A DNA stretch of 64,000 bases, taken from contig QPMI01000682.1 of NCBI GenBank assembly GCA_004431415.1, positions 1 to 64,000 of the forward strand, written 5' to 3'. The translations under genes were made by a program, and so were the position numbers. The stretch is from Cyanophora paradoxa CCMP329. Lineage: Eukaryota > Plantae > Glaucophyta. Below the pieces are notes generated by a model, which worked only from the letters and a program-made list of their open reading frames with translations, was not told the origin of the DNA and ran no database searches. Of this stretch, positions 13,751 to 44,772 are shown piece by piece; positions within the stretch are counted from its first letter, which is position 1; each line of letters opens with the position of its first letter.

Positions 13751-14506
13751 CTACGCGTCACCGCCGTCGCGGGGGCCCGCCACGAGGAGGTCGTAGTGGT
13801 GGAGCCGGATGACGCTGCCGGGGTGGAAGCGGAGGTTGATCGCGACGCCGGAGGGGCCGGCCCCCCCCGAGGGGACGGCGGGCCCGGGTCCTACAGGCTC
13901 AGGCCCCGGGGCGGACGGCGCGTCACCGGCAACGAGGTCCGGGGATGCATCGGCGAGGCCCGGCCCGGATCCGGAGAGGGCTGGAAGGGCGCCACGCCCC
14001 CTCGGCCCGGCGGCCTGCGGGGGGAGCGATCAGGGCGGCGAGGGCGCGGCCAGGCACGTGCGCGGGGACGCGCCTTCTTCCCTCCCCCCCCCTTCTTCCC
14101 CTTCTTCTTCCCCATCTTCTCCTTCTCCTCCTCCTCCCCCTCCTCGGGGGCCGGGGGAGGGTCCTTCGCGTCGACGCGTACGACGAGGGAGTCCCAGCCG
14201 CCGCCGCACCGCACAAAGTGCACGACCAGCGGCGCCTTGAAGATCTCCGAAAGGGCGAGGAGGACGATCCGACCTGCAGCGCGATCAAACCCGAGGGGAG
14301 CGACCTAGGCCTGCACGGAGATAGAGGGCAACTGCCTCGAGGTTGACCAGCTCCGCAACGCTCGCCGGCACGCGTGCGATCTCGTTGCCGGAAAGGAAAA
14401 GCGCAGTCACGTTTCTCGGGCCGACGCGCTCGAGGTCCCGCGTCGGCCACTCCGTCAGGTTTCCGTCTCGCAGGTCCAGCCGGCCGGTGGCCGCGAACCA
14501 CACCAT
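13751..14506 (-). CDS. Small spliced protein with an N-terminal leucine-rich-repeat-like segment and a Glu/Lys-rich linker
   Basis: The first exon reads MVWFAATGRLDLRDGNLTEWP..VTALFLSGNEIARVPASVAELVNLE (LRR consensus LxLxxNxIxxVP). Later exons include EEGEEEEKEKMGKKKGKK and ..RLHHYDLLVAGPRDGGDA*. Splicing is not fully resolved. Confidence 0.45.
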
Positions 14507-14747
14507 ATCTGGTGCTAGCGCTCCTCACGCGCGCCCGAGCCTCGCCGTCGATCGGCTGCAGCTAGCGGGCGCGCTGCAGCTGGTGGATGGTGGTGCTTCT
14601 TCTTGAGTGTGCAGTGGGCTTAACGTGCATAAAGTATGTTACAGCTTTTTAAGAACGTGTTAGAGCTCTCTCTGTCCCGGTCCCGCTGCTTTCGCTCGAA
14701 TTCGCTCAATTTCGCTGACCAGCCGGGGTACGCTGCAAAAGTCTACG

Positions 14748-16886
14748 ATGACCGGCCCGATCCCTCGCGCCGTAGAGTTCAAAGACGGCGCGCTGCGCCT
14801 GATAGACCAGAAGGTCCTGCCAACTGAGCTGAAGGCCCGCCCCCCGTCCGCCAGCTGCGGTTGCGCTCCACTCACGCAAGGCGCGCCGGCAGATCCTGAC
14901 GATCAACACGCTCGAGGGGGTCTATGCTGCGATCAAGGACATGACCGTTCGCGGGGCGCCGGCGATCGGTGCTTCGCGCTCGAGCGATCCAGTGTGGGCG
15001 AAGGGAGCTGACGCGTGCGGGCTCGCTATGCAGGCGTCGCGGGAGCCTATGGCATGGTGATTGCGGCGCGCGCGTCGACTGCGAAGGAGCGCGAGCCGCT
15101 CGTCGCCGATCTCACGAAGGCGAAGGCCTACCTCGACTCGTCCCGGCCCACGGCTGTGAACGTGCGCGGGGCCGCCGGGCGCCCTCGGTGCGCCCTCACC
15201 GCGAGGCAGCTCATGTGGGCGACGGGCCGAATGCTGGAGGTCGCGACCGGGAACGCGAGCCTCTCCGCGGAGCAGGCACCCTCCTCCCCGCCCGCCGGCC
15301 CCGCGCTCCTCGACTCCGCAGCAGATCCGACGCGCGCTCGCGATGGAGGCCGACGCGCTCGCCGCGGAGGACATCGCTGTGAACCGCCGCATCGGGCACG
15401 CCGCCCTCGCCTCGAGCCCGCCCGCCGCCCGCCGCCGCCGCCGCTCACCCCGCGCGTAGCGAGGCTGGCGCGGCGGTGATCCCGCAGAATGCGAACCTGC
15501 TTCACCACTGCAACACAGGCGCTGCACGCGTCGCGCCGTGACGCGCACGCGACCTGACTCGTCGCGCGCCCTCGCAGGTTTCCTGGGTGCGCCCCGCGAT
15601 TGCGCGGCGGGCGCCCCGGTCGCCGCCGCCGCGGGTCCCAACGCATAGTTCTCAGCAACCGTCGACCACGGCACCGCTCTCGGGATCATCTACTCGTGCG
15701 TCGAGCAGGTGCGGCCAGCCTCGCCCCGCCTCGCCCCGGAAGCCCAGCACGGGGTGCCGGCGCGCCTGACTCCGCCCGCAGAAGAAGAACGTGCGCGCTC
15801 CTAGCTGATCTCTCACGGGCCGGTCCTCCGCGGCGCACATGCGGCTGACGGGTGGGCGCCGCCCTCAGATCCACGTCTGGGTCGACGAGACGCGGCCCCG
15901 GCTGCAGGTCGGCCACGCCGCGCCCACCCGCCGCCCCGCCCCCGCCGGCCCCGACCTTACGACGACCCCGCAGGGCGCCCGCCTCACGGCCTGGGAGCTC
16001 ATGCAGCGGAGAGTGCGCGCCGGCGCCGCGGGGCCCCGCCGGCTCGCTCGGCACGCGCCCGAACCGAGATGCCCCCCTCCCCCTCACGTCAGGTCCCCAT
16101 GCACCTGATAGCGGACAACGCGGCCGGGCTCCTCATGCGGACAGGGAAGTGCGTCGTACCCCCTGCCTCGGTCGTACCGCCCTCGAGCCGGCGCAGGGTC
16201 GACGCGGTGGTATTCGGGGCCGACCGCGTGACGGGTGCCGGCGCCGCGCCGCCGCCTCCCCGCCGCCCCCGCCGCCGGAGCGAGCGGGCGGGGGCGCAGC
16301 GAACGGGGACGTGGCAAACAAGGTGGGCACCTACAAGCTCGCCGTCGTCGCCCGCGAGAACGGCATCCCCGTCTACGCCGCCGTGCGGGGGCCCCCGCAC
16401 GCCCCTCGGGGCGGGGCGCGAGCGACGCCGCCCGCGCAGGTCCCGACCTCGACCATCGACCTGAACATGGCGCACGGCGATCTGATCCCCATCGAAGAGC
16501 GGTCGGCCGACGAGGCGCGCCCCGCCCCCGCCCCGGCGTGAAAGGGGGGGAGGCGGGCGGGCCCTGGTTTCATGCTTGCGTCACCCCTGCAGGTGACCCA
16601 CGTGAACGGCTCGGCGGTCGCCCCGGAGGGCGTCCCCGTCTTCAACCCGGCCTTCGACGTCACGCCGCACAAGTACCTCACGGGTTCGAGCCGCGCCGGG
16701 GCCCGCTCCGGTGGGCCGGCGGCGATCGGGCGGCCGCGTGGCACCGCAGGGATCGTGACGGAGGCGGGCATCTGCTACCCGCCGTTCGGGGTGAGCCTGC
16801 GGCGCGCTGTCGAGGCGGTGCGGGCGGAGGTGGGCGCCACACGCGACGAGCGCCTCAAGACCATCCTGTCGGCAGTCCAACACTAG
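14748..16886 (+). CDS. MRI1: Methylthioribose-1-phosphate isomerase (methionine salvage, eIF-2B alpha-like family); 17 exons
   Basis: Manual splicing gives the diagnostic motifs [91 protein letters not shown] and [14 protein letters not shown]. The stop is at 16884-16886. Confidence 0.95.
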
Positions 16887-19057
16887 CAGGTACTACGGTA
16901 GACCAGCTTGTTGGGGAAGGGTAAAACACTTCCCCTGTCCCTGTCCCTTGGGCCCAACCCTACCCCAAATCCCATTTCCCCGACCTCCGCAAAACCGGGG
17001 CCGCGCGGTACACCCTGAAAGCGCATCCCCAGGGGACCCCGAAACCATGTCTCCCGATCCCGTCCGACCAAAGGGTGATCCAGGAACAGGCACCAACACC
17101 CGGGACAAAAATGGGTCCAGCGACGCACAGGGAGCAGATATACGGGCCAGACCAGTTCGAGGTCGTTGCGCGCATCATGTTCGACATTCCGTACTGCAAG
17201 CGCAAGGCCGGGCGCGAGCGCGGTCACGTGGGAGGACGCAGCGCGCGCTAGCCAATCACATTGGAGAGTCAGTTAACTTACCCTGAGAAACCTCTTAAAG
17301 TACCCCCCGGCCGCTTTCTCCCCCGGGCGCCGCAGCTCGGCTCGGCTCAACAATGGTTACGCCTCTCGCGCGCGCGGCAGCTTGCTGTGGCTCAGCGGCT
17401 AGCCGCGCCAGCCGCGCACGCTTCACCCGCGCCAACCGCGCCCCGACGCAATTGCACAAGCCGGCCGCAAGCCGGCCGCACTTGGCCGGCTATGCCACTT
17501 GCAACAAGCCGATGCCAGCGCGGTGCGCGCGCCGCGCGTCGCAGAGCCCCCCCGCGCGCGCGCGATGCGCATGCCTGCAGCTGCTGCAGCCGGCGCCGCT
17601 GATCATGAGCTGGCCCGCTGCACCGCTTTTTGAGCGGAACGTGAGCTTGAGCAGCGTCCCCGCGCCCGCGCCCAGATCGCGCGGAGGCCGAGGCGCCGGC
17701 GCCGGCCAGCCCCTATAGCTAGCTATGTAGCCACGCGCGCCGTGACGCACGTGCACCCGCAGCACATGCGCACTCGTGCACCCGCCACGCCTCCGCGCGC
17801 GACGGCCGCGGGGCATGCGCAGCCTGGCAGCTGCAGGAGCTCGAGCACGTCCATGGCCAGACAAGGTTCCCTCCCCCTTCCCAAGGCCCGGCCCGCGCCT
17901 TACATAGCTATAGCTAGCTCACTAGGCCCTGATCATGAGGCCTACCTCTAAGAGGACAGCTCGCCTCGATCGCGAAGACAGCTGCAGCCGCTGAGCTCGC
18001 CTGGCATGGCCAGCCTCGGCCGGAGCCGGCCCAGCGGCTCGCCCGGCCACCGCGCGCGCGCCTTCTTAAGCTTAAGCGCTAGTTTAAGTCCCTGCAGCTG
18101 CCCTCTGCATCTAGATCTTGGATTCACCGAGGTTAAATGCCCTTCCCCGGACCCAACTGACGCGCGCGGCAAGTCAGTGGCCCTTTATAGACCTCAGCAC
18201 GCTGCGGTCGCGAGCAATTGCAATCATTGAATGCCATGATGACTCTCTATAGCTATATCTCAGTGAGCCTCGGCCCTCGGACCGGCGTCGGATACTGGCT
18301 GCAGCTGTTATATACGTAGCCATTAACCTCGCAATTGCAATTTGCAAGCCTTGACGCTTATTAAGCGCCGCGGCGCCACCATCGCGTTCAACGGTTGGGA
18401 CCGGATCCGTCGCACGTCTCCGAGTCTCGCTTAATCGCCGAGAGAGTCGCCGCGCGCACGCGAACGTACTACGTGCTGGGCGACATCGACTGCAAATTCT
18501 GCAATCGCTGATGGATTGAAAAGCGATCCGTGCACGTGTCCGACGGTCCAGAACTTCTACATGTACAGATTTTGAGCACGAGCAGCTGCGTGCCGCGCCG
18601 GCTCAAGCTAAAGTACTAGTACTGAGGACTGATCGACCTAACTTTTGCTGTGATCACGCCCGACGGATGTACATGTACATGTACGCTAGGACTGCCACTA
18701 CTCTTTTGAAATGATCTGCGCATTTGGCCGTCGGGCCACCGACTAAAATAATCTTGCCTTCACACTAGTCTAGATTGATCGAGATGTATAGTACTAGTAC
18801 TGCTTTTCGATCGAGGCTGAATGGCAAAAGCGCGAATTCGAGGATCGTCCGAGGAAAAGCAAAAAAACCCACAAGACATCAGAAAACGCAAGGTTTACTA
18901 GGGATGAATAAACAGTCAGCGGTGCGGTGACTGAGCGAAGCGTGCCGTCGACAAGAAGCACAGGCGGGACGCGCGAAAGAGAACGAAAGCTGCGCATAGG
19001 ACGAATTCGGAGAATGAGGGCGAGGACGAGGCGAGGGGGCCGAGTCCGAGCCGAGGG

Positions 19058-21480
19058 CTACATGTCGCCCCAGAATACGCCGGAAGGGAAGTAGTGGGAA
19101 GGCTGGCCCTGTGCGCCCTGCAGGGCGGAGGGGTCGGGGGCGTCGTGGGAGGCGGTGAGGAAGGCCGGCGGGCGCTGCAGGGTCTCCATGCCGGCGGGGA
19201 GGAAGTGGGGCGAGGGGGCGCCCGCGGCGTAGGCGTAGGCGGCGGGCCCCTGCTGCGTGGCAAAGAGGGCCTGCGCGGCCCAGGGCGCCATCGCCCCCAG
19301 CCCGTAGCCGCGCATCCCCTCCCAGCCCTCCGCCTCGGCGAGGGCCCCCTGGAGGGCGTAGGCGGGGAGGGCGGAGAGGGCGAACGCCTGGTGCGCGCCT
19401 GCCGCCTCCTGCTCCAGCTGGTGCTGCTCCGCCTGGGCCTGGGCGCGGGCGTGGCCGTAGAGGCCGAGCTGCTGCTGCTGCAGGCGCTGCTGCTGCAGGC
19501 GCTGCTGCGCGAGGGCCTCGCGGTAGCGCTGTTGCATCAGCGCCGCCGCCGCCGCCGCCTGCCCGCTCTCCCCCGTCCCCTGCTTCGCGCCGGGGCTCGC
19601 GGAGAAGGACCCGGGCGGGAGCGACGCCGCTCCACCTTGCTGCTGCTGCTGCTGCTTCTGATGCTCCTGTTGATGGGGCTGCTTCTGCCGCGGCAGCTGC
19701 TGGAGCTGGGGCGACTGCTCTTCGCGCATGCGCCGTGCGGCCTGCTGCAGCGCGGTCTGATGCTGGGCCTGCTGGTGGGCCATCGCGAGGTGCAGCTGCT
19801 GCTGGATGGTGAGGCCGGCCCAGCCCATCGGCGCCTGCGCCGGCGACGCCTGCGCCCGCTGCGCGTGCTGCTGCACAACGCGCCCCCCCTCGAGGTACAT
19901 GGGGCCGCTCGGATGCGGCTGCGGGCGCGGCTTCGTGCGCCGCCCGCCCCCGCTGCTCCCGCCGCTGCTCCCGCCGTCGTCCCCCGGCCCCTCTTCCCCC
20001 TCCGCCTTGATCTGGAAGTTGACCGTGGAGACCTTGGTCGGCTTCTGCAGATGCTCCGACGAGCGCCCTGCGCACCACGCCCCGCCCCTCAGGCGCCGCC
20101 CACCCCGCGCTCTGGTCGAGGCCCGGCCCGGCGCACGCTTGCGGGCGGCCCCCGTGAGCACGCAGCCCGAGGGCGAATCGGGTCGGTCCAGGTCCTGCTG
20201 CGTCGCCGGGTCCGGCTCGCCCGGGAGCATCAGGGGGTACCGCGCCATGCCTGCGGGGCCGGGGGGGTCAGCGGCGGCCGCCACCGGGGCCGCCCCTCGA
20301 CCGCTGTCGCCCCTCGACTGCAGCGGCGCACCGTCCACCATCATCTTCTTCGACTCGGAGGAGCCGCGCGCCTTCACGTACATCTGCGAGCGCCGCCCTC
20401 ACGCCCGCCCCGCGCCCATCCCCCCGAGCGAGCCGGCCGGTCGCGGCGGCGAGGTGCACCTTGATGACGCCGCGAACGGCCAGACCCTTGCTCGCGCCGT
20501 CGCAGGTGATGTCTGTCGCGGGGCGTGAGCGAGCATGAGGGGGGGGGGGGGGGGGGGGGGGGGGCGGCAGCGTCTTACCGAGCCAGAACCAGCGGCGCCC
20601 ATGAAGGAACTGGAGGTTAGAATTAGAGCATGTATGAGGGCGAGGGGCGGCGGGTCTCGGACCGAGGTTGCGGCCAGGGCGAAGGTGAAGGATGCCTCTC
20701 CCGACTCCGTGACCTCTCCGTCTGCGGCGCGATCCGCCGTCAGATCGGCCCTGCTGCCGCCTCGCTCAAAGACTGCACGCCCCGGAGGAAGCGCGCACCC
20801 ATTTCGACGCGGGGCTCCGGCCCCGGCCGGCTATCGCTGAAGTACACGAACGGGAAGTCCCGCGGGCTCCGCTCTGTCGTGGAAGCCGAGGAGTCCTTCT
20901 CCTTCCCTTCACGCTTCGTTTCCACCAGCACTCTCGTATCCGCTGGGGGAAATCATCATACGAGAAACGATGGGGGCCGGGACAGTGGGCCGCAGGGGCA
21001 AGTGAAGCACCGCACCGTATCGCAAACAGACTTTCAACTGCACTCCTTTCCAAAGTGCGCATTCTTGGGGGTCCGTTGACGTGAGCGCGAGCCTGTAGCG
21101 TTGCTCGCTGACCATGGTGTAGCATACGGCCTTGTCGGTCGGGTCCACTCTGCGGGCGCGTGCCTGGGCGATGTGCACTTTGAGCATCAAAATAAGCAGA
21201 GCGCACCTGAATGCGTCAGCCCCATAGAACGAGCCTGAGCGGTGGCGTTAGCTGTTAAAGACACAGGCAGCACTTCAACAATATGTGACCTTCGTGCTTG
21301 TAAAGGCTGCGGCGTGCCAATGTTAGCGACAAAGACAGCCGCGCGGAAGCACAGAGCGCACTTTCGCTTCAAAAGTCGGAAAGTCGAGTCTGCCAGCGCC
21401 TGCGCCGGCGAATCCTGCGGCCAGAGCGACGACGGCTGCTGAGGAGCCCACGACCCTGTCAATTGGTTCGCAGCTTCCAT
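19058..21480 (-). CDS. Multi-exon hypothetical protein with a Gln/Ala-rich low-complexity C-terminus (possible transcription regulator)
   Basis: The long terminal exon has poly-Q tracts and ends ..GVFWGDM* at 19058. Upstream coding-like exons are flanked by splice signals. The start at ATG 21480 is tentative and no domain was recognised. Confidence 0.5.
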
Positions 21481-22366: not shown

Positions 22367-22548
22367 GAGTGGATTACTCCAGCAAAGCGTGAGAGTAATC
22401 TGTCTTCTTCGAGCAAGGCCGCGCGGAGTGCGGAAGGCAGCGTGACGCCTTCCCCCGCGGCGCCGCTCGCGTACGCCCCCTTCGGGCTCAGATTTTGTGT
22501 ACCCGAGCCGGCTAGCGCAGGCTCGGGCTCTCGCGGCTTTTGCCGACC
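22367..22548 (+). repeat. Split direct repeat A1 (182 bp, left terminus)
   Basis: Identical by eye to 29695-29876. Confidence 0.93.
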
Positions 22549-22585
22549 ATTGCCAGCAGCAGCAGCTTGAAATCAGAGTCGCGAG

Positions 22586-25500
22586 ATGAGTGACAACGCG
22601 GGGCCACCGCGGCCGTACTTCCTAGCGAGCCAAGGTTCGCCGCCGCCCGATTCGCCGCCCCATGGGGATGCAGGTCGTGCTTTCACGAGCAACATGCGAC
22701 CGGCATCTCCACGGCGCGAACGGACGGCGCCTACGCGCACGCAACTCGCGGATCAGCAGAACCATTTGGAGTCAGAGCAACCACAGACTGAGGATCGGCC
22801 TCGGTTTCCTGGCCTCCGGGCTGCAGGAACCGATTCTGCACGTAGCCGATGGGCCTCTGGGCCGCACGAGCTAGTCGCGGGCCCGCGGGGCTCTTTCGGC
22901 CCACCGGACTCCTCGAGCACGCACCAGGCTGACGCGGGGCGGGGCTGCGTGCCATGCAAGAGCACAGAGCATGAAGGCTCACGCACGTTCCTGCTCGCGG
23001 CCGCAGGCACGCTGCACACGTTCATCAACCACCTGCGCCGCACGCGCGTCCAGCTGCCTCGCCGTTTCATGGCCCAGTCCATGCAGCACGTCCTGCACGG
23101 CCGCTACGCGGGCCCTGAGTCGACGGCGCGGCTCGCCGCCGACGAGAAACCGATCGCGGGCAAGGCGATGTCGCTCGGCGAGTACACGGCCGAGGGCCGG
23201 CTCTACGCGCTCTGCTACAGCGAACCGGCCGAGGGCACCGAATCGCAGCCCACGGCCGCTTTCGAGGTCCTGGAGACCGGCGAGTTCCGCTGGCTCGCCG
23301 GCGGCGAGCACGTCGAGCTGCTGAGCGAGCACGTCGTGGCGGTTCCTGCCACCACCGGCGCCGGCACGCCTCTCGAGTTGATCTACCACGACACGAACAC
23401 GCTCACGGAGCTGATCTACGCTAGCCGCCCGGAGGGCGACGTACCGAACCGCCGCCGCGAGCTCACGCAGGCGTACCTTGCCATCTTCCGGCGCATGGCG
23501 GCGCTCGCCGACGGCCAGCAGTTCGGCGACATCACCCTCGAACTCGTCCTGAAGCACATGCCGCACCAGCCGACTCTCGAGATGATAGCGCTGGGCACGC
23601 TCTCGCACCCGTTCATATTGGGCGGCCTCTGCGCGAGCACCAGCGACCCGGCCTTCCCGCGCGCCTTCCAGCAGCGATCGCGGCTTCCGCAGGCGTCGGT
23701 CGTGCGCGAGATGCTCAACTCGGGGCGCTGCCTCGTGCCTGGCTGGCAGGCCTTCGGACCCAACGGCTCGCACACTCCGCTCGGCGGCGGCCTGATCGGC
23801 ACTCTCGACCAGATCCTCGCTCCGGACATGATAGACTGGCCGGCGGCGGCGCGGTTCTTCGTGGGCCTGGCACCCGCCGCCGGCCCGACCCCGGGCCCGA
23901 GCGGCGCCAGCAACCACGCGGCGGCGCCCGGCGCCGGCGCCGGTTCGAGTTCGGCGGCCTCCGACTGGCTCGCGCTGCCGCCCCCGCCAGCGATCCCGAC
24001 GGCCCAGCCGGCGGGCGGCGCCGGTGCCGACGCCAGCGCTAGCGCTGGCTCGAGCTCGAGCTCGGCCCCGGCCGGCCCTGCCCCCTTCCTCGACGGCGCA
24101 AGCATCGCGGCGGCGCTAGGCCCAGCCCTCTCGCAGATGGCCGTGGGGGCCGTGCAGGCGGCCATGCAAGGCCTGCAGCCCCTCACCGGCTCCATCTCCA
24201 CCGCGATCGGCACCATCAACTCCAACCTGAACGTCCTGGCCTCCAACCAGTCGACGACCAAGCTCGAGTCCAAGGAGCACCGCGACCCTGCACCCAAGGA
24301 GGGCGCCATGGCAGCCTACACTACGTCAAAGGCGATCGACGCCCTCCTCGGCTCCTTCAACCTCAACACGCTGTTCCTCGACTTCCGCAGCAGCGCCGCG
24401 GAGCAGCTCACCAAGGCCCGCAAGGCGCGGGAGGGGTTCCTGCCGGTCAGCATCCTCAACAAGACAAACGACCTGGCGATGAAGGACCTCTTCCGCGCCA
24501 TCGGCTCTTCCTCCGCCTGGCACATGGCCTTCGCCGCCGCCGACGTCGCGGTCGAGATCCAGGGCGCCGCCCAGTTCCAACTCCTCATCAGCCTGCAGTC
24601 AGCGCAGCGCCTGCGGAAGGCTGGCGATGAGGCAGCAGCGAACGCCTCGGCGGCCTGTGCCCTTCACGTCTACCGCACCATCGAGGCGGCCACCGAGGTC
24701 CTCTTCGCCCTCGGCGGGGGCAACCCCATCTACACCCCCCACCGGAGCCCACCTGGCGCCCAGCCGCACAGCAACCCCCCCCCGGGGGGGCTGGCCCCCT
24801 CGATCGCGGCGTATGGCGCCTCCCTCCGGGCCCACGCCTCCTCTGCCGTCCTGCGTGAGACGGCAAAGGACATCGGCTGCAAGCTGCCCCTGGAGAAGAT
24901 CGGCGCGGACTCGGCCATCCACACGCACGAGCCCGTCCAGCTCTGGGACATCCGCGCGGCGGAGAAGAGCCTGACGACCCTGATCAAGTCGCCGGCCCTC
25001 GACTCCGACCCGACCAAGGTCAAGGCCTTCCTGGAGAAGGTTGGCGGCGCGACCAAGGCCGACGCCCTGGCCTCCGGGTCATCCAGCTCGTGCCAGGTCG
25101 ACGTCACGGGTGCGGGCTTGGCCCCACCGGCAGTGCTGACCTCAACACCTCGCCCCCCGCCTCGACCGGTCCCTTACGCTTTGCGCCTGTGCACACAGTG
25201 GCCGAGGAGGTCATCGAGCAGCTTGAGCGCAGGCTGGCCCGGGAGGCCCGTGGCGGCGGTGGCGGCGGCCAGCGCCAGCAGGCGCCCCAGCGCGACCGCA
25301 GCCCACGCCGCGACGACCGCCGTGATGACCGCCGCGACGACCGCCGCTTCGACGACCGCCGCGACGACCGCCGCGATGACCGCCGCGACGACCGCCGCGA
25401 CGACCGCCGCGACGATCGTGACCGCCGCGATGACCGCCGCGACGACCGCCGCGACGTGCGCCAGCGGCGCTAGGCACAGCGCTCGCGCTAGCGGTTCGGC

Positions 25501-28180
25501 AAAGGCTGAGCGAGCGAGGCCTCGAGATGCCCCGGCACTGGGCCATGATTTCTTGTTTCATTTGAGCCGGGCACCTCTCACTGATAGTGATCGCGAGGCT
25601 TCTGACGCCGTGAGGGGCGGAGAAGGGCCCGGGGCGATGCATACATATGCACATGCGGCAGCCCCAATGGGGCCGCCGGGCACGGGCACCCTGGTGGCTC
25701 TCTCCTCCTCCAATGCACTGGCACCACCCGGGACCGGGGGGATGCACCTTGAGAGGCTGCGGGCTCTCGTGCGCGAGCACGGCGCCCCCCCACCTTATGA
25801 TTTCAAACTACACGAGGCAGCCTTTAAGGCGGGGCAGCTGAGAAAATTTGCGCCGGCCTGGGTCCGTCAGTTCCGGAAAGTCGGCGCGGTGCTGCCCCGC
25901 TACGTGCACCTAGTGCTTGCCCGCGGGGCCCGCTTCGCGCTGCACGACGCAGAGCGCCACGACCCGCGCGATGCCTGGGACCCCAAACAGGCTATCTCGC
26001 CGGCCCAGATCCCCCCCTTCGAAGAGGATCCGCGCCCCTCCTGCTATCAGACGCCCGCACACACGGCATTCATCGATGGCGAGGTGGAGGGGCCCGGCAA
26101 GGGGATGGTGGCCATGGGCGTGGTTCGGCGCATGGCACCGGATGAGCCGCCTCCCCTCCACGTCTCCCCCCTTCACACCGTCGATAAGAAAGGGGCAGAC
26201 AAGTTCCGTCTCTGCCTCGACGCCAAGCGCATCAACCGCTACATCCACCTCCGCGCGTTCCGCTACCAGACGCTCGATCAGGTGATCGAGTTACTACGCC
26301 GCCACCCGGGCTGCTGGTTCGTCTCCTACGACATGCGCAAGGGCTACTACCACATCGCCCTCTGCCTCCTGACGGCCGGCATCTTGGCCTTCAAGTGGAC
26401 TTTCGAAGGCGTCACGCGCTACTACACCTACGAGGCCCTTCCCTTTGGCGTCGCCGCGGCATGCTACATCTTTACCAAGGTCATGCGCGCGTTTGCCAAG
26501 TACTGGCTGGCGCTGGGGATCATCCTCTGCATCTACCTTGACGACGGCCTCTTCATCTGCGGATCCTACGAGGAAGCCATCCTCGTCTCCATGCACCTCC
26601 GTCACCTCGGCGTGTTGCTCGGCATCACCTTCTCCGACAAGTCAGATTTCGAGCCTTCGCAAGATCGCGTGCACCTGGGCCTCGGCCTCGACACCGGCAC
26701 CGGCAACGGCTACTGCTTCTTACCCAAGAAGAAGATCGAAAAGCTTCTCGCGGTGCTCGAGCTCCTCCGAGGGGCATCTGCGGCCCCGGCCGTCGAGCTC
26801 CAGCGCATTGCTGGCTCGCTGAACGCGGCCCGGCATGCCTTCGTCGGCACTGCCCTCGTCGCGCGCCCCCTCTCTGCTGCTGTTGCCCTTGCCGAAGGAG
26901 CAGGCAGCGACCCCCGGGCCCGCGTCCCGCTCGGCCCCCTGCAGCAGGCAGTGATCGCCTGGCTGCTGCAGTACCTGCCGACGGCCCCACCGGCCCCCCT
27001 GGGGCGCCCTGCCAGCGCGTACCGCCTCTTCACGGATGCATCGGGCTCCGGCTATTGCGCCGCGCTCGATGTCGCCTCCACGCGGGAGCCTCTCTCGCTG
27101 GCTCGCAGCGACTTTCGGGGCCTGTTCGGCGTCTGGCCCCCTGAGATCGCGGAGGAGGACAACTGCTGGCGCGAGCTGCGCGCAGTCCTCATTGCCGCCA
27201 CTGAGCTCTTCCCCCTCCTGCCCGCTGGCAGCCATGTGATCGCCCGCGTTGACAACGCGTCCGCGGTGGCCTCGGCCCTTCGGGGCAGCGTCAAGGAGGG
27301 CATGATGGATCTTGCCCTGCGCCTCTTTTCGGCCTGCATCAAGGCGGGCGTGACACTAGAGGCAGTACACGTGCGCGGCAAAGACAACGTGATCGCCGAC
27401 GCCGGCTCACGCTCCCGTGCCCCCACCCTGCACAACAGGCTTCGCCGCCGGCTGGCCGCCCTGGCTCTCGGCCGCAAACAGGCCGACCTTCCGCACGTGC
27501 ACGTGAACGCGCGACGCGGGGCCCCGTTCACCTCCCCCCTCCCGGCCGCCGGAGCCGTGATCACGGTCGACTGGCAGCACCGCCCTCGATTCATCAACTG
27601 GCTCTGCGAGAGCGGTGATCAGCCGGGCGCCTGCTGTATCTGGCTCCTTGCCCGCCAACCAGGCGCCCTCGACTGGAGACCCCTCCACGCCGTTGCCGCT
27701 GCGCGAGGCTGGCTCCTCTGCCCGCTTCCTGAGGCTTGGGCACCACGGCACCTGTTCTACGCTGCCGAGGGCAGCGGCTCCGAGGGGCTAGGCCGCTCCC
27801 CTTGGCCCCTGTGGGTCTGCGCCCCGTCAGCACCCCAGGGGCTGATCACGGCCTTGACCTCGCAGGCCCCTATGGCGGAGGCCCTCCTCCCGTCGCGGCC
27901 CCCGTGTACGGGGCCTGGGGCCCGCCCCCCGGCGTCTGGCCGGCGCCAGCCTACCCCTGGCCGCACCCGGCCGTCTGGCCAGGCCACCCTATCTGGCCAC
28001 CCGCAGGCGCAGGCGCCTTTCCTCACGGCGGCCTCGGGCCAGGCCCAGCGCACGCCGCTGCCGACGCAGCACCCCGCGCTGGAACAGCCCCTGCTGCCCC
28101 ACCGCCCGGACCCGTGGGCGCCGGCGGCCCCGACCGCGCCCCTCGCGACCCGGCCTTGGAAGCGCGCAAGGCCGAGCTAG
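22586..28180 (+). CDS. DIRS-type Gag-like + reverse transcriptase + RNase H polyprotein (1864 aa)
   Basis: RT motifs KFRLCLDAKRIN, YDMRKGYYHI, LPFGVAAA and IYLDD. RNase H motifs LFTDAS, WRELRAV, VDN and HVRGKDNVIADAGSR. Confidence 0.92.
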   Translation: MSDNAGPPRPYFLASQGSPPPDSPPHGDAGRAFTSNMRPASPRRERTAPTRTQLADQQNHLESEQPQTEDRPRFPGLRAAGTDSARSRWASGPHELVAGPRGSFGPPDSSSTHQADAGRGCVPCKSTEHEGSRTFLLAAAGTLHTFINHLRRTRVQLPRRFMAQSMQHVLHGRYAGPESTARLAADEKPIAGKAMSLGEYTAEGRLYALCYSEPAEGTESQPTAAFEVLETGEFRWLAGGEHVELLSEHVVAVPATTGAGTPLELIYHDTNTLTELIYASRPEGDVPNRRRELTQAYLAIFRRMAALADGQQFGDITLELVLKHMPHQPTLEMIALGTLSHPFILGGLCASTSDPAFPRAFQQRSRLPQASVVREMLNSGRCLVPGWQAFGPNGSHTPLGGGLIGTLDQILAPDMIDWPAAARFFVGLAPAAGPTPGPSGASNHAAAPGAGAGSSSAASDWLALPPPPAIPTAQPAGGAGADASASAGSSSSSAPAGPAPFLDGASIAAALGPALSQMAVGAVQAAMQGLQPLTGSISTAIGTINSNLNVLASNQSTTKLESKEHRDPAPKEGAMAAYTTSKAIDALLGSFNLNTLFLDFRSSAAEQLTKARKAREGFLPVSILNKTNDLAMKDLFRAIGSSSAWHMAFAAADVAVEIQGAAQFQLLISLQSAQRLRKAGDEAAANASAACALHVYRTIEAATEVLFALGGGNPIYTPHRSPPGAQPHSNPPPGGLAPSIAAYGASLRAHASSAVLRETAKDIGCKLPLEKIGADSAIHTHEPVQLWDIRAAEKSLTTLIKSPALDSDPTKVKAFLEKVGGATKADALASGSSSSCQVDVTGAGLAPPAVLTSTPRPPPRPVPYALRLCTQWPRRSSSSLSAGWPGRPVAAVAAASASRRPSATAAHAATTAVMTAATTAASTTAATTAAMTAATTAATTAATIVTAAMTAATTAATCASGARHSARASGSAKAERARPRDAPALGHDFLFHLSRAPLTDSDREASDAVRGGEGPGAMHTYAHAAAPMGPPGTGTLVALSSSNALAPPGTGGMHLERLRALVREHGAPPPYDFKLHEAAFKAGQLRKFAPAWVRQFRKVGAVLPRYVHLVLARGARFALHDAERHDPRDAWDPKQAISPAQIPPFEEDPRPSCYQTPAHTAFIDGEVEGPGKGMVAMGVVRRMAPDEPPPLHVSPLHTVDKKGADKFRLCLDAKRINRYIHLRAFRYQTLDQVIELLRRHPGCWFVSYDMRKGYYHIALCLLTAGILAFKWTFEGVTRYYTYEALPFGVAAACYIFTKVMRAFAKYWLALGIILCIYLDDGLFICGSYEEAILVSMHLRHLGVLLGITFSDKSDFEPSQDRVHLGLGLDTGTGNGYCFLPKKKIEKLLAVLELLRGASAAPAVELQRIAGSLNAARHAFVGTALVARPLSAAVALAEGAGSDPRARVPLGPLQQAVIAWLLQYLPTAPPAPLGRPASAYRLFTDASGSGYCAALDVASTREPLSLARSDFRGLFGVWPPEIAEEDNCWRELRAVLIAATELFPLLPAGSHVIARVDNASAVASALRGSVKEGMMDLALRLFSACIKAGVTLEAVHVRGKDNVIADAGSRSRAPTLHNRLRRRLAALALGRKQADLPHVHVNARRGAPFTSPLPAAGAVITVDWQHRPRFINWLCESGDQPGACCIWLLARQPGALDWRPLHAVAAARGWLLCPLPEAWAPRHLFYAAEGSGSEGLGRSPWPLWVCAPSAPQGLITALTSQAPMAEALLPSRPPCTGPGARPPASGRRQPTPGRTRPSGQATLSGHPQAQAPFLTAASGQAQRTPLPTQHPALEQPLLPHRPDPWAPAAPTAPLATRPWKRARPS
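25306..25457 (+). repeat. 12-bp tandem repeat (GACGACCGCCGC)n, read as DDRR or TTAA depending on frame
   Basis: Seen directly. Both frames are open across it (ORFs 22586..28180 and 25090..25473). Confidence 0.9.
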
Positions 28181-29181
28181 AGGCAGCGGTTGAGGACTGG
28201 GCACAGTACGCCCTCTGCGAGCGGACGCAGCGGGCGTACGATAGCATCGTTGCCCGTTTCCGCGACTTCTGCCGGGAACTCGGTGTCGAGCCTCTTGGCA
28301 TCGATGCCGTGCGCCTCTATGCAGCCCAGCTGGGGCTCGAAGGCAAGCAGTGGTCCACCGTCCGTAAGCACCTGTCAGCAATCGCCGGTCGCCTCGCCCA
28401 CGAGGGACACCCGCTGCCGGCGGGCGCCCTATCTTCGAAGGCCCTTCGCGGCCTCCAGATGATCACCGAGCGCGCCGCGGACCAGGCCACCGTTCTTGCC
28501 CCGTCCCAAGTCCGGGCCTGGCTCTCCACGGACGACTTCCTCCGCCGGGGGGTCTTCGTCCAGCAGCGCGACCTCGCCCTCGTTCTGACGATGATCTTCG
28601 GCCTCCTGCGCTACGACGACGCCTGCCGGCGCCTGCGCCTTGACAGCGTCGTCGAGGCCTCAACTCGCGGGGCCCCGCGCCCCGGCCTCACCCTCATCCT
28701 CCGGGCCGACAAGACCAACCCGGCTCGCCGCGGCCCCAACGCGGGCGAGGACCCCGAGGGATGCCACGGTGAGCGTACCGTCACGATCACGGATATGCCA
28801 GAGCTCGGCCCGCTCGACGCCACACGCGCCCTCCGCCACTACCTTGCCAACTTCTCGGCCGAAGAGCGCCGCCTCCCGCAGCCCCTCTTCATCAACGACG
28901 AGGGCGAAGAGCTTTCCTACACCTACGTCAACAACATCCCCAAGCGCATCGCCACCTCCCTTGGCCTCAGTCCTGAGGATGGCTACTCCTCACACTCGTT
29001 CCGCCGCTCCGGCACAACTTGGGCCGCCCTGGGAGGCGCCGAAAAGCGTGTGCTCGAGGTCCACGGCCGCTGGTCGCACCGTGGTGCCACGGCGGAGCAG
29101 TACATTGATGCAGCGACGGAGCTGTCGGGCCGGGCGTGTGCACACATGTCCCAGTACCTGGCGGCAGTCCTGCCGCAGTGA
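27736..29181 (+). CDS. Tyrosine recombinase of the DIRS-type element
   Basis: SAM-like N-domain (TQRAYDSIVARFRDFC..STVRKHLSAI) and catalytic residues GLLRYDD, HSFRRSG, HGRW and EQY. The listed start is TTG; the first ATG lies inside the domain. Confidence 0.92.
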   Translation: MGTTAPVLRCRGQRLRGARPLPLAPVGLRPVSTPGADHGLDLAGPYGGGPPPVAAPVYGAWGPPPGVWPAPAYPWPHPAVWPGHPIWPPAGAGAFPHGGLGPGPAHAAADAAPRAGTAPAAPPPGPVGAGGPDRAPRDPALEARKAELEAAVEDWAQYALCERTQRAYDSIVARFRDFCRELGVEPLGIDAVRLYAAQLGLEGKQWSTVRKHLSAIAGRLAHEGHPLPAGALSSKALRGLQMITERAADQATVLAPSQVRAWLSTDDFLRRGVFVQQRDLALVLTMIFGLLRYDDACRRLRLDSVVEASTRGAPRPGLTLILRADKTNPARRGPNAGEDPEGCHGERTVTITDMPELGPLDATRALRHYLANFSAEERRLPQPLFINDEGEELSYTYVNNIPKRIATSLGLSPEDGYSSHSFRRSGTTWAALGGAEKRVLEVHGRWSHRGATAEQYIDAATELSGRACAHMSQYLAAVLPQ

Positions 29182-29343
29182 TGCCTAGATGGCCGAGGGG
29201 CCTTGTGACACGTGCCGTGGCAGCGATGGCCAATTGCAGGGCCTCAGGCGGCAGCATTGTGCATTTAGGGCAGTCGAGATGATATGATGATCATGATTCT
29301 GCTGCTGCTACTGTTGCTGCTGCTGCTGGCCCGAAGTGCTGCC

Positions 29344-29694
29344 TGGCTCAAAATGCTGTACCCCCCTCGAATTCGCGTACCCCTGGGGGCGCGAATCGAG
29401 TACCCCGGACGGCAAGATCGCCTACCCCTCGGCACACGGGGAGCGAAGAGATATCCTCCCCAACCACGCCCGCGAGGCAATACGTGGTCTATCCTTTTCG
29501 GGCCCTGGGGCCCTCCCAATCGGCCCTCCTCTGATGCTGTGCGGCCCCGGCCACGGCTCGATGAGCAGCCGCCTGCTTCCTCTTTTTCCCCTGCAGCTGT
29601 GCATGCGCGCAGAGGCCCATTTCCCAACTCGCAGCGGGCGAGCGGGCGCGGCAGCGAACGGCCGCGCGCAGCGGCGGGCCGTCGCGTAGAAGAA
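29344..29694 (+). repeat. Split direct repeat B1 (351 bp)
   Basis: The first 81 bp recur at 30455-30535 and the remainder recurs at 31440-31723. Confidence 0.88.
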
Positions 29695-29876
29695 GAGTGG
29701 ATTACTCCAGCAAAGCGTGAGAGTAATCTGTCTTCTTCGAGCAAGGCCGCGCGGAGTGCGGAAGGCAGCGTGACGCCTTCCCCCGCGGCGCCGCTCGCGT
29801 ACGCCCCCTTCGGGCTCAGATTTTGTGTACCCGAGCCGGCTAGCGCAGGCTCGGGCTCTCGCGGCTTTTGCCGACC
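29695..29876 (+). repeat. Split direct repeat A2 (internal B|A junction copy)
   Basis: Matches 22367-22548. Confidence 0.93.
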
Positions 29877-30454
29877 CTCCCACCGTCCCCAGCTTCACCT
29901 ATGCACAGGACTCAATGGCGCGCAGGCGCAGTCGACCGTCGGACGTCCTAGATAAAACTCTCGCCAGCGCCAGGCGTAACTCAAGATATCGATCATGATC
30001 AAGCAATTGTGCTTGACATGAGCCTGGCCGGCGACCTCAAGAATGACAGCCGCAGGATTAATAATCGCCCCAGAGTATGGGAGTCTTCTTTAATTTCAAG
30101 TTTTTGCTTCTTTTCATTTCATCACTAGTACTACCTTTCAACTGCTTCACCATCACAATCGATCAGCTTTCTTTGAATTTCTGTACAGCTTCACATTCTT
30201 CGAATGCAACTTCTGCACAGCTTCATAGTCATCTTCTACGTACACTTCAGCTGTTGAGTCAGGATCACGCAGGTCTGCTCACAGCATAGATATCAACCGC
30301 CTTTTTGTAGGCCGCCGATTTGGGCTGGGTTTCTGTTGCTTTCCCCAGGGCCCCCAGGCTCCGGCCTGGCCCCATTCCGCGGGCCTTATTTCAATGGCTG
30401 TCATGCGGATGGGTTATCTTTCTCCTGTTGAGGAGACTTTGTTTTTCGAATTCG

Positions 30455-31723
30455 TGGCTCAAAATGCTGTACCCCCCTCGAATTCGCGTACCCCTGGGGG
30501 CGCGAATCGAGTACCCCGGACGGCAAGATCGCCTAGCTAACAAATGAATTCGCACACACCGAGACAAATGGCTAGGGATATGACTGCAGTGTCCATCTGT
30601 GTCAAGTCGAGAGATGAGCCTACGGGAACAAGCCTTTCGGACATCGGACCGGGTGGAGCTATTGTACTGGAGAAAGGGGCCTATACCTGCCTAGAAACAC
30701 TGCCTACACCTGCCTAGAGAGCCGAAGCAGAGCAGAGCTACTATAACCCCCTCAGGACAAGGGCGCCTACAGAGAGGACCGATGTATAAGCGAGGATGAG
30801 GTCGAAGCGGCTGAGCCTGAACTATAGCCCTCAATTTGGCAGGGAAGAAGCGCACTAAGAGAGCAAGGCCAACTAACCCAGGGAGGGCCGGAAACCGGAG
30901 CCCGTGAGAGCCCGGGTGAAAACCGGCGGGCGCACAGCATCGCCGGCCGCAGCCGGCGACCTGTGCTCCTCGGCCGAGAGATACCTCCTCCAGCTGGCGC
31001 GCGCGCGCGCGGAGTCCGCTGCGGCGGGGGTTGGGAGGCCCCGGGCCGCCCGAGTGCTCAGAAGCACGTCGCCTCGCCAGGAATCCAAGCATCTGTGCGG
31101 CCGCGACGCCCACGGCCGCGACGCGGGCGTGCACTCACACGACCGACGATCATCTGCGCGGGCGCAGCACATGTCGCCGGCCCCATAGCCGCGGGCGGCC
31201 GATCGCTGCCGCAGAGAAGTGCTTGGGCTGAACGAGAGAGCAGCTGCTGAAGCCGCCGCTGGTGTTCGCTGGAGTAGCTCGCCGAACCGACCCACGGAGC
31301 GGATTCCTAACGGACGCGCGGCTAACCAGCTAGAGGAGGGCTAAAAGGCACCGCCGAGGCGATTCGCGGCAGCCGGAGAGGCGCCCAGCGGGCAGGAGCC
31401 CGCTACCTACTTTCTCTCCAGGTCGGGGTACGCGAATCCCGGCAAGATCGCCTACCCCTCGGCACACGGGGAGCGAAGAGATATCCTCCCCAACCACGCC
31501 TGCGAGGCAATACGTGGTCTATCCTTTTCGGGCCCTGGGGCCCTCCCAATCGGCCTCCTCTGATGCTGTGCGGCCCCGGCCACGGCTCGATGAGCAGCTG
31601 CCTGCTTCCTCTTTTTACCCTGCAGCTGCGCATGCGCGCCGAGGCCCATTTCCCAACTCGCAGCGGGCGAGCGGGCGCGGCAGCGAACGGCCGCGCGCAG
31701 CGGCGGGCCGTCGCGTAGAAGAA
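30455..31723 (+). repeat. Split direct repeat B2 (right terminus), interrupted by a 904-bp insertion
   Basis: 30455-30535 plus 31440-31723 reconstitute B1, with the 15-bp junction sequence duplicated. Confidence 0.85.
30536..31439. mobile_element. 904-bp insertion flanked by a 15-bp target-site duplication (CGGCAAGATCGCCTA), possibly a 5'-truncated non-LTR retroelement
   Basis: TSD copies lie at 30521-30535 and 31440-31454. The site is single-copy and uninterrupted in B1 (29410-29424). Confidence 0.7.
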
Positions 31724-31969
31724 ACTGTGATGCTGACGTACACGTGCCACGTCACGGCCCACGTGGCATTGCAGACTTGCAGATCCAGATATCAATCATA
31801 CACATCCACAGAAAATGTGGAGTACTCTTATTCATGACTATGATTCGATGTCATTCGATGTCATGATTCGATGATTGCACTTCATTGTAAGCGCTGCGGG
31901 CGCTGTGTGGGGTATTTAATTTCCCGGAGAGTTTGCGAACGCGCACCCTCCCACCGATTGCTCCCCCCA

Positions 31970-34900
31970 CACAATTGCTTGATCATGATCGATCATCGGA
32001 TATCTTGAGTTACGCCTGGCGCTGGCGAGAGTTTTATCTAGGACGTCCACTGCGCCTGCCCGCCATTGAGTCCTGTGCATAGGTGAAGCTGGGGACAGTG
32101 GGAGGGTCGGCAAAAGCCGCGAGAGCCCGAGCCTGCGCTAGCCGGCTCGGGTACACAAAATCTGAGCCTGAAGGGGGCGTACGCAAGCGGCGCCGCGGGG
32201 GAAGGCGTCACGCTGCCTTCCGCACTCCGCGCAGCCTTGCTCGAAGAAGACAGATTACTCTCACGCCTTGCTGGAGTAATCCACTCTTCTTCTACGCGAC
32301 GGCCCGCCGCTGCGCGCGGCCGTTCGCTGCCGCGCCCGCTCGCCCGCTGCGAGTTGGGAAATGGGCCTCGGCGCGCATGCGCAGCTGCAGGGTAAAAAGA
32401 GGAAGCAGGCAGCTGCTCATCGAGCCGTGGCCGGGGCCGCACAGCATCAGAGGAGGCCGATTGGGAGGGCCCCAGGGCCCGAAAAGGATAGACCACGTAT
32501 TGCCTCGCAGGCGTGGTTGGGGAGGATATCTCTTCGCTCCCCGTGTGCCGAGGGGTAGGCGATCTTGCCGGGATTCGCGTACCCCGACCTGGAGAGAAAG
32601 TAGGTAGCGGGCTCCTGCCCGCTGGGCGCCTCTCCGGCTGCCGCGAATCGCCTCGGCGGTGCCTTTTAGCCCTCCTCTAGCTGGTTAGCCGCGCGTCCGT
32701 TAGGAATCCGCTCCGTGGGTCGGTTCGGCGAGCTACTCCAGCGAACACCAGCGGCGGCTTCAGCAGCTGCTCTCTCGTTCAGCCCAAGCACTTCTCTGCG
32801 GCAGCGATCGGCCGCCCGCGGCTATGGGGCCGGCGACATGTGCTGCGCCCGCGCAGATGATCGTCGGTCGTGTGAGTGCACGCCCGCGTCGCGGCCGTGG
32901 GCGTCGCGGCCGCACAGATGCTTGGATTCCTGGCGAGGCGACGTGCTTCTGAGCACTCGGGCGGCCCGGGGCCTCCCAACCCCCGCCGCAGCGGACTCCG
33001 CGCGCGCGCGCGCCAGCTGGAGGAGGTATCTCTCGGCCGAGGAGCACAGGTCGCCGGCTGCGGCCGGCGATGCTGTGCGCCCGCCGGTTTTCACCCGGGC
33101 TCTCACGGGCTCCGGTTTCCGGCCCTCCCTGGGGTTAGTTGGCCTTGCTCTCTTAGTGCGCTTCTTCCCTGCCAAATTGAGGGCTATAGTTCAGGCTCAG
33201 CCGCTTCGACCTCATCCTCGCTTATACATCGGTCCTCTCTGTAGGCGCCCTTGTCCTGAGGGGGGTTATAGTAGCTCTGCTCTGCTTCGGCTCTCTAGGC
33301 AGGTGTAGGCAGTGTTTCTAGGCAGGTATAGGCCCCTTTCTCCAGTACAATAGCTCCACCCGGTCCGATGTCCGAAAGGCTTGTTCCCGTAGGCTCATCT
33401 CTCGACTTGACACAGATGGACACTGCAGTCATATCCCTAGCCATTTGTCTCGGTGTGTGCGAATTCATTTGTTAGCTAGGCGATCTTGCCGTCCGGGGTA
33501 CTCGATTCGCGCCCCCAGGGGTACGCGAATTCGAGGGGGTACAGCATTTTGAGCCACGAATACGAAAACAAAGTCTCCTCAACAGGAGAAAGATAACCCA
33601 TCCGCATGACAGCCATTGAAATAAGGCCCGCGGAATGGGGCCAGGCCGGAGCCTGGGGGCCCTGGGAAAAGCAACAGAAACCCAGCCCAAATCGGCGGCC
33701 TACAAAAAGGCGGTTGATATCTATGCTGTGAGCAGACCTGCGTGATCCTGACTCAACAGCTGAAGTGTTCGTAGAAGATGACTGTGAAGCTGCGCAGAAA
33801 GTTGCATTTGAGGAATGTGAAGCTGTACGGAAATTCGAAGGTAGCTGATCGATTGTGATGGTGCAGCAGTTGAAAGGTAGTACTAGTGATGAAATGAAAG
33901 GAAGCAAAACTTGAAATTAAAGAAGACTCCCATACTCTGGGGCGATTATTAATCCCGCAGCTGTCATTCTTGAGGTCGCCGGCCCGGCTCATGTCAAGCA
34001 CAATTGCTTGATCATGATCGATCATCGGATATCTTGAGTTACGCCTGGCGCTGGCGAGAGTTTTATCTAGGACGTCCACTGCGCCTGCCCGCCATTGAGT
34101 CCTGTGCATAGGTGAAGCTGGGGACAGTGGGAGGGTCGGCAAAAGCCGCGAGAGCCCGAGCCTGCGCTAGCCGGCTCGGGTACACAAAATCTGAGCCTGA
34201 AGGGGGCGTACGCAAGCGGCGCCGCGGGGGAAGGCGTCACGCTGCCTTCCGCACTCCGCGCAGCCTTGCTCGAAGAAGACAGATTACTCTCACGCCTTGC
34301 TGGAGTAATCCACTCTTCTTCTACGCGACGGCCCGCCGCTGCGCGCGGCCGTTCGCTGCCGCGCCCGCTCGCCCGCTGCGAGTTGGGAAATGGGCCTCGG
34401 CGCGCATGCGCAGCTGCAGGGTAAAAAGAGGAAGCAGGCAGCTGCTCATCGAGCCGTGGCCGGGGCCGCACAGCATCAGAGGAGGCCGATTGGGAGGGCC
34501 CAGGGCCCGAAAAGGATAGACCACGTATTGCCTCGCAGGCGTGGTTGGGGAGGATATCTCTTCGCTCCCCGTGTGCCGAGGGGTAGGCGATCTTGCCGGG
34601 ATTCGCGTACCCCGACCTGGAGAGAAAGTAGGTAGCGGGCTCCTGCCCGCTGGGCGCCTCTCCGGCTGCCGCGAATCGCCTCGGCGGTGCCTTTTAGCCC
34701 TCCTCTAGCTGGTTAGCCGCGCGTCCGTTAGGAATCCGCTCCGTGGGTCGGTTCGGCGAGCTACTCCAGCGAACACCAGCGGCGGCTTCAGCAGCTGCTC
34801 TCTCGTTCAGCCCAAGCACTTCTCTGCGGCAGCGATCGGCCGCCCGCGGCTATGGGGCCGGCGACATGTGCTGCGCCCGCGCAGATGATCGTCGGTCGTG

Positions 34901-39279: not shown

Positions 39280-39288
39280 GATATCTTT

Positions 39289-40200: not shown

Positions 40201-40228
40201 TTTATTATATGAATATAGATTAAAGAAA

Positions 40229-41239: not shown

Positions 41240-41291
41240 ATTAAGGATCATTCACAGAATTTTTATATTTCTCTATTGTAAAAGAGAAATC

Positions 41292-42692: not shown

Positions 42693-42752
42693 ACCATTAT
42701 TAGTAAGACTTCGTTATTTTTATCTATCTTTATTAAGAAGATCTACAACACC

Positions 42753-43535: not shown

Positions 43536-43563
43536 AATTATCTTCATTATTATTAAAGATACA

Positions 43564-44295: not shown

Positions 44296-44321
44296 ATATA
44301 TATCTTTTAAAGAGGAAATCA

Positions 44322-44570: not shown

Positions 44571-44594
44571 AATATTTGTAATAAGTATCGAATA

Positions 44595-44720: not shown

Positions 44721-44772
44721 AGGTACTGCGATATTACACACTGATAAAATATTTTCTCTGCTTAAAATAAGG

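Follow-up and report, generated by a model that had tools for sequence, protein, structure and literature searches.

Drosophila copia makes a 2-kb spliced RNA that is dedicated to Gag. In the barley Ty1/copia element BARE1, a facultative intron of 104 nt lies where gag meets the protease region; once it is spliced out, the reading frame changes and meets a stop three codons later, which leaves an RNA for Gag alone, and the intron is retained in the genomic copies (PMC3735527). Arabidopsis EVD and other Ty1/Copia elements make an alternatively spliced subgenomic RNA, shGAG, from which structural protein is made in excess of catalytic protein, with the EVD splice removing the protease region and being coupled to premature polyadenylation (PMC5580714). 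PAT-like and other DIRS-order elements (Pat1, kangaroo and TOC3; DIRS-1) have been laid out with separate or overlapping open reading frames (ORFs), and introns are never mentioned in that account (PMC3266345). Here, we analysed 64,000 nt of GC-rich nuclear DNA of the glaucophyte Cyanophora paradoxa CCMP329 (contig QPMI01000682.1, positions 1 to 64,000; the window), in which an intact, young tyrosine recombinase (YR) retrotransposon of the DIRS order, probably PAT-like, spans positions 22367-29876. An 89-nt segment at the 3' end of its gag gene is likely to be an intron of host type, and a toggle between Gag and a Gag-Pol fusion through its splicing or retention appears plausible from the sequence.

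Results

A frame switch across an 89-nt candidate intron in gag

The region around the end of gag is laid out as follows, with frame 1 (F1) denoting the frame of gag and pol and frame 2 (F2) that of the Gag tail:

22586-28180, + strand: stop-free frame F1 of 1864 codons, from the ORF listing and its translation, comprising leader, gag, the 89-nt segment, the repeat in its (TTAA)n reading, a spacer, and reverse transcriptase (RT) with RNase H
23069-25109, + strand: gag exon 1, in F1; probable start at ATG 23069 (MAQSMQ...), the last base being the first base of a split Val codon
25110-25198, + strand: candidate facultative spliceosomal intron of 89 nt, GTGCGG...CTTAC(-23)...CACACAG, non-coding-like in three frames
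25199-25473, + strand: gag exon 2, in F2; helix-like VAEEVIEQLERRLAREA, a Gly6 hinge and a 60-residue tail, with TAG at 25471-25473
25306-25456, + strand: 12-nt tandem array (GACGACCGCCGC)n, (DDRR)n in F2; Tandem Repeats Finder (TRF) gives a period of 12 (11.8 copies) and a second one of 51
25474-25666, + strand: spacer between gag and pol, non-coding-like in all frames and stop-free in F1
25667-28180, + strand: pol, in F1, with RT followed by an RNase H-like TDAS region; Pfam RVT_1, E = 1.2e-11; gene model P0007 starts at its ATG 25667

The donor GT of the candidate intron occupies 25110-25111 (CGG|GTGCGG) and the acceptor AG 25197-25198 (CACACAG|TGG). Division of 89 by three leaves a remainder of two, and joining the flanks would complete the split codon from G at 25109 and TG at 25199-25200 (GTG, Val). 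Past the junction, translation would proceed in the frame of an ORF running from 25090 to 25473, reading VAEEVIEQLE and later (DDRR)n. An initial annotation of this DNA had described the GTGCGG..CACACAG segment, with a length that is not a multiple of three, the shift upon its removal into VAEEVIEQLERRLAREARGGGGGGQRQQAPQRDRSPRR(DDRR)n..RQRR with a stop at 25473, and the Gag-RT-RNase H frame that stays open upon its retention, where the 12-bp repeat reads (TTAA)n; our reading of the sequence agrees with it on each of these points.

Coding signal was measured independently of the splice signals, by codon log-odds trained on the pol and YR genes of the element only. On this scale, the end of gag (24800-25109) scores +0.86 in F1, and the 89 nt score -0.57 in F1 and -0.07 in F2. 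Exon 2 reaches +1.00 in F2 versus -0.77 in F1 in its non-repeat part, and +1.10 in F2 and +0.34 in F1 in the repeat; overall, its F2 values range from +0.94 to +1.10, with F1 at -0.6 to -0.8 in the non-repeat part. The spacer has -0.52 in F1. For comparison with empirical windows, true-coding windows of the element score 0.80 +/- 0.31, off-frame windows reach at most 0.17, and the 99th percentile in the neighbouring non-coding satellite is 0.38. At 0.94, exon 2 in F2 scores like true coding sequence and above anything seen in off-frames or satellite, whereas the 89 nt, at -0.50, -0.05 and -0.33 in the three frames, lie lower than any true-coding window of the element; the corresponding values for the spacer are -0.59, -0.68 and -0.13. 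In a sliding profile, the F1 signal falls at ~25070-25110 and the F2 signal rises at ~25190, and the coding frame therefore moves by one base across a gap of ~90 bases that resembles non-coding DNA. GC content by codon position is flat across the 89 nt, and F1 holds no stop where its coding signal ends. This layout, the frame relations and the switch in coding signal are direct observations.

The edges of the gap coincide with consensus-like splice signals. The donor motif GT[AG][ACG]G occurs five times in the 2.2 kb from 23069 to 25300, with 25110 as its sole occurrence within 250 nt; the downstream edge has a phase-compatible CAG, preceded by CTTAC at a distance of 23 nt. The pair 25110/25198 stands out because it sits at independently measured edges of coding signal and has the only consensus-like donor nearby. 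Host introns average 86 bp, at 9.2 per gene (PMC6704402), and the 89 nt match this mean length. No stable RNA structure was seen, the fold of 25100-25210 being weaker than those of its shuffles (z = +1.74). The F2 tail frame is devoid of Met and is therefore translatable only when joined to gag. Taken together, the frame switch, the AUG-less tail, the consensus-like splice signals and the host-typical length are intrinsic evidence that supports the intron and an arginine/aspartate (RD)-tailed Gag well, and both are probable; for 25110-25198 itself, we consider a real intron likely.

The last 60 residues of the tail comprise 30 Arg and 25 Asp, and a CCHC knuckle (CX2CX4HX4C) was found in no sense frame of 22586-25700, in line with the earlier statement that Gag ends in a mixed-charge RD tail in place of a zinc knuckle. 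The Arg/Asp tail would probably bind or condense nucleic acid, as zinc knuckles do elsewhere. Read in F1, the 12-nt array is (TTAA)n-like with T/A/V/M variants. Each of the six differences between repeat units is a C>T change at an F2 third position, silent in F2 but amino-acid-changing in F1, and there are two changes in array length, +3 and -3; these variants lend the F2 reading modest support only, because the 51-nt higher-order period makes the events non-independent. Used as a word-search query, the non-repeat part of exon 2 had no match.

Pol and the possibility of a Gag-Pol fusion

Between gag and pol, the spacer contains eight stops in F2, two in frame 3 and none in F1, and F1 is without stop over the whole of 25109-25666. 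The spacer shows no similarity to the termini or leader of the element, and the family is therefore without an internal leader copy. The search with pol returned the local model P0007 (BRAKER/EukProt tig00021687_g23115.t1), which matches the pol and recombinase genes of the window at 100% identity, and one 62%-identical relative, P0008, from a 3790-nt contig of Logan sample ERR10034898. P0008 is a member of a sister family, and its contig begins only 90 nt before its ORF. Conservation between the two begins at ~25664, and the gag tail and the region upstream have no similarity to P0008. The RT/RNase H ORF of P0008 carries a non-conserved extension of ~160 aa before the conserved pol start, and a second ORF in another frame starts 6 nt past the stop of the first.

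Several features speak for a fusion. Gag and pol share one frame, and F1 is stop-free over the 186 codons from the donor to conserved pol, with a joint p of ~0.06 (dinucleotide shuffles for intron and spacer, synonymous-codon resampling for exon 2); 5.8% of positions on the antisense strand of the element are open for this length. The pol ATG at 25667 corresponds to a Leu in P0008, whose pol frame is open for ~160 codons further upstream, and it has no purine at -3.

A possible splice switch and its alternatives

From these observations, we infer a spliced RNA and two proteins that could be made as follows. Gag would carry a facultative 89-nt intron of host type at its 3' end (25110-25198). 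Its removal by the host spliceosome would shift the frame by one base and lead to the stop 91 codons later, at 25473, and the spliced product would be Gag alone, ~771 aa long when counted from ATG 23069, whose C-terminal part would hold a helix, a glycine hinge and an Arg/Asp tail of ~60 residues. The unspliced RNA would be the template for reverse transcription, and indeed must be, because the DNA copy retains the intron. We are less sure of the following step, in which gag on the unspliced RNA would be read on into pol without a change of frame, through the intron, the TTAA-like repeat and the spacer, and ribosomes starting at the gag AUG would yield a Gag-linker-RT/RNase H fusion of ~1700 aa. 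How efficiently the RNA is spliced would then determine how much structural protein is made relative to enzyme, as it does in copia, BARE1 and EVD. Given the intron, we lean slightly towards such a fusion by retention; the whole switch, with Gag from spliced and Gag-Pol from unspliced RNA, is a serious possibility that we would stop just short of calling probable. Somewhat more tentative again is the general proposal that a YR retrotransposon lacking a protease could use the spliceosome as its Gag/Gag-Pol switch, with the RD tail replacing the zinc knuckle and the uncleaved fusion being packaged via its Gag part.

A number of points weigh against this model. The intron, its splice sites and both frames were read in one copy only, and the splice sites were judged as consensus-like; no host gene clear enough to yield a Cyanophora splice-site matrix emerged in the window. 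Within a few hundred bases, 73 GT..AG pairs would formally join F1 to F2. The published annotation has no gag model at this locus. An exhaustive search with gag exon 1 (841 aa) found only three clusters of Cyanophora gene-model fragments, all from other copies; the fragments stop by gag residue 724, and neither the exhaustive nor the word searches turned up a protein that includes the gag 3' end, spans the junction or contains the tail. As for the fusion, the 186 codons between donor and pol have no coding signature in F1, with a GC content at third codon positions (GC3) of 0.54 in the spacer, and stop-free runs of this length arise in ~5% of non-coding frames of such GC-rich DNA. The candidate was, moreover, chosen from a large scan, which inflates coincidences, and a 2-6% chance event is expected somewhere. 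Nor could a fusion be processed, because DIRS-order elements are without a protease and none was found here: Pfam gave no protease family at E <= 1 in any piece of ORF1 or pol, absence from Pfam being weak evidence in itself. The published BRAKER model P0007 starts Pol at its own ATG 25667, and donors in the leader (22389 and 22428) together with a CAG acceptor at 25661 would permit a separate pol mRNA. The earlier claim that intron retention produces Gag-Pol and sets the ratio thus fits the open F1 frame and is weak where it would have to account for a p of only ~0.06, the non-coding-like codons, the missing protease and the Pol ATG.

In a rival reading, the intron is real and RD-tailed Gag is made, and Pol is expressed separately, from ATG 25667 or another AUG in the spacer, by a subgenomic or alternatively spliced RNA or by reinitiation, the open frame being a coincidence of GC-rich DNA. 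Besides the start of P0007, the frequency of open runs and the non-coding-like character of spacer and intron in F1, this reading has in its favour that DIRS-order elements have been given separate ORFs and no protease (PMC3266345), and that the leader donors are consensus-like (22389, GTGAGAGT; 22428, GTGCGGAA) and the CAG acceptor lies just before the Pol ATG. However, it leaves the shared frame (1 in 3) and the open frame (p ~0.06), jointly ~0.02, to chance, and the Leu at the position of ATG 25667 in P0008, the open pol frame upstream of it, the lack of a purine at -3 and the dissimilarity of spacer and leader all argue against it. We regard separate expression of Pol as unlikely, although with appreciable weight. 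The intron itself would be dispensable if this copy, or the assembly, had lost a single base in the C6 run at 25153-25158 or nearby, and the loss had split a continuous gag that runs into the RD tail, with pol as a separate ORF. Indeed, the tail frame is open back to 24859, and a single frameshift placed optimally within the 89 nt gives a path score of 0.018, with 8% of genuine gag windows (low-complexity linker) scoring as low; codons ending in A or T are in excess, at 8/30 (p = 0.046). Both values disfavour an indel only marginally. Yet ~6 kb of gag, pol and YR coding sequence in the same copy show no other frame break, the terminal repeats are identical over 182/182 nt, and the 89 nt hold codons that are rare in the element (TTA, AGT, ACA, TTT and GGT, at 1-4 per 1000). 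A consensus-like GT and a CAG exactly at the edges of coding signal, in the right phase and with CTTAC at -23, would then be coincidental, and we find an indel improbable.

Two further readings retain the 89 nt in every RNA. In the first, the uninterrupted ORF of 22586-28180 would encode one Gag-Pol protein of 1864 codons, and (DDRR)n would be an unexpressed frame, a by-product of a simple repeat; simple GC-rich repeats are open in several frames. This reading is very improbable in view of the F2 score of the non-repeat part of exon 2 (+0.94 to +1.00 versus -0.6 to -0.8 in F1, where off-frame windows reach at most 0.17), the repeat variants that are synonymous only in F2, and the stretch of 186 non-coding-like codons in F1. 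The other has ribosomes reach the tail by programmed -1 frameshifting within 25090-25198, for instance at C CCC CCG (25153-25159). The tail frame is indeed -1 relative to gag, this heptamer has the X XXY YYZ form in the right phase, and the YR ORF is likewise -1 relative to pol and without an AUG. At eukaryotic -1 sites, however, YYY is AAA or UUU and Z is not G, and the sole heptamer, with CCC and G, runs against this rule; no downstream structure was seen, by the fold described above. Besides, the zero-frame product would be the fusion and the shifted one Gag, the reverse of the stoichiometry that is needed. Frameshifting into the tail is therefore hardly credible, and removal of an intron is the reading of the frame switch that we prefer.

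Gag start and further splicing predictions

The first ORF is named gag by its position. Pfam gave no match in gag or in exon 2, and the last 167 aa of gag exon 1 had no match in a word search of protein databases. An ESM Atlas search returned no usable match, and an AlphaFold2 model of the C-terminal half of gag, made without an alignment, was all-helical and unusable (pLDDT 38). The codon log-odds of gag are positive from ~22976 to ~25100, including with the model trained on pol and YR only, and gene model P0002, from another copy, begins at the same Met as ATG 23069, which is probably the true gag start. The first ~130 codons of the 1864-codon ORF (22586-22975) are without coding signature, and the leader holds eight ATGs upstream of ATG 23069.

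The BRAKER isoform P0003, from another copy of the family, removes an in-frame, stop-free interval of 78 nt (GTGCCT..ACCAG) within gag, corresponding to 23735-23812 of the window. In the copy studied here, this interval has coding-like codon usage in frame (0.61), which is compatible with an exitron-type alternative intron or with an artefact of gene prediction. Its removal in P0003 is a hint that the family is spliced, which we do not count as independent proof because the interval looks coding in frame.

The element and its genomic setting

The remaining parts of the element are:

22367-22548, + strand: A1, the 5' copy (182 nt) of the split direct repeat, with 100% identity to 29695-29876
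27736-29181, + strand: tyrosine recombinase ORF, with no AUG near its start and a 445-nt overlap with pol; its absolute frame is that of F2
29695-29876, + strand: A2, the internal/3' copy of the split direct repeat, 100% identical to 22367-22548

The ORFs follow the order of a Pfam-less first ORF, reverse transcriptase, a TDAS-type RNase H-like stretch and an overlapping tyrosine recombinase ORF. The RT domain of the DIRS order is present as a Pfam RVT_1 match of 45.1 bits (cut-off 29.6). A tyrosine recombinase takes the place of the DDE integrase, as indicated by sub-threshold, concordant Pfam matches in the right domain order, namely Phage_int_SAM_4 (N-terminal SAM-like; 1e-4, 22.7 bits, cut-off 27) and Phage_integrase (5e-5, 23.5 bits, cut-off 27.1), and by the homologous models P0009, from a sister family (tig00000581), and P0010, both carrying PF00589; Pfam found no DDE integrase (rve) in the element. 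No Pfam match to a methyltransferase domain was obtained after RNase H (26600-28177), this domain being poorly modelled in Pfam. Of the split direct repeats (A1...B1 A2 B2) that PAT-like elements have instead of inverted terminal repeats, the A parts were seen, with A1 and A2 identical at 100%, and the B parts are masked by an adjoining 2.03-kb tandem array of terminal modules. These features fit the PAT-like branch of the DIRS order as set out in PMC3266345.

P0007 joins pol to YR via a 137-nt intron (GTACGG..GGCCAG, 27906-28042). We rejected this intron, which is unsupported by coding signal (the switch comes only at ~28110-28140) or by conservation; P0008 and P0010 both conserve the tail of the pol frame (DPWAPA...KRAR). 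One possibility is that YR is translated by frameshifting near the pol stop.

Downstream, the 3' terminal module of the element recurs over 29344-39279 as units of 2.03 kb, mostly inverted relative to the element and at 95-100% identity. An unbroken run of 26 G (20539-20564) lies just upstream of the element, and a block of ~40% GC (39280-56243) is set within DNA of 60-78% GC. The first part of the window (1-19000) has 71-80% GC and long overlapping ORFs on both strands; its single weak Pfam match is Ephrin_rec_like, in 7832-10177 (+).

Comparison with known systems

We know of no account of how DIRS-order elements proportion their proteins. If true, the splice switch would be the first concrete expression mechanism for this order, and the copia/BARE1 solution would have arisen independently, by convergence, in a protease-less element. 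There are hints that Cyanophora, an intron-rich alga, has retrotransposons that keep and use introns of host type, and the switch would be one more; this bears on how their genomic RNA escapes splicing. The initial annotation gave the switch as apparently undescribed for DIRS-order elements, and our literature searches turned up neither natural introns nor control by splicing in them, within an incomplete coverage of the literature; the claim of novelty has to be narrowed, however, since the same logic is established in Ty1/copia elements (BARE1, EVD and Drosophila copia). The mechanism, if true, is new only for the DIRS order and for a setting without protease.

With the described PAT-like and DIRS-order elements, the Cyanophora element shares RT, RNase H-like and YR regions, a gag-like first ORF, direct repeats that are probably of the split kind, overlapping pol and YR genes, and the lack of a protease and a DDE integrase. 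It departs from them in that gag shares its reading frame with pol and is broken by an intron-like segment. In purpose, the proposed switch resembles the -1/+1 frameshifting or readthrough of retroviruses and long terminal repeat (LTR) elements, which yields mostly Gag and a smaller share of Gag-Pol from a single RNA region; unlike there, the slippery heptamer and stable structure of a programmed -1 site are lacking, in that neither a rule-fitting slippery site nor a structure was seen, and control would be nuclear, through splicing, rather than ribosomal. EVD is similar in the proposed spliced RNA dedicated to Gag and differs in element order.

The closest parallel is BARE1. As in the copia/BARE1/EVD type, gag and pol are continuous in the unspliced frame (the 1864-codon ORF), and, at the sequence level only, removal of a candidate facultative intron would end the ORF after gag; as in BARE1, this intron is short, not a multiple of three in length, and placed at the gag end. 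BARE1, in contrast, is an LTR element with protease and integrase and a stop three codons past its junction, with the Cyanophora element being a protease-less YR retrotransposon with a functional-looking tail of 91 codons, and with its splicing predicted from the sequence. Of the LTRs and the protease-integrase-RT-RNase H order that define Ty1/copia elements (Pseudoviridae), it has neither protease nor integrase, a YR instead, and apparently split repeats in place of LTRs. The Cyanophora element, on the reading favoured here, would thus work like BARE1 and copia while not being a member of their family.

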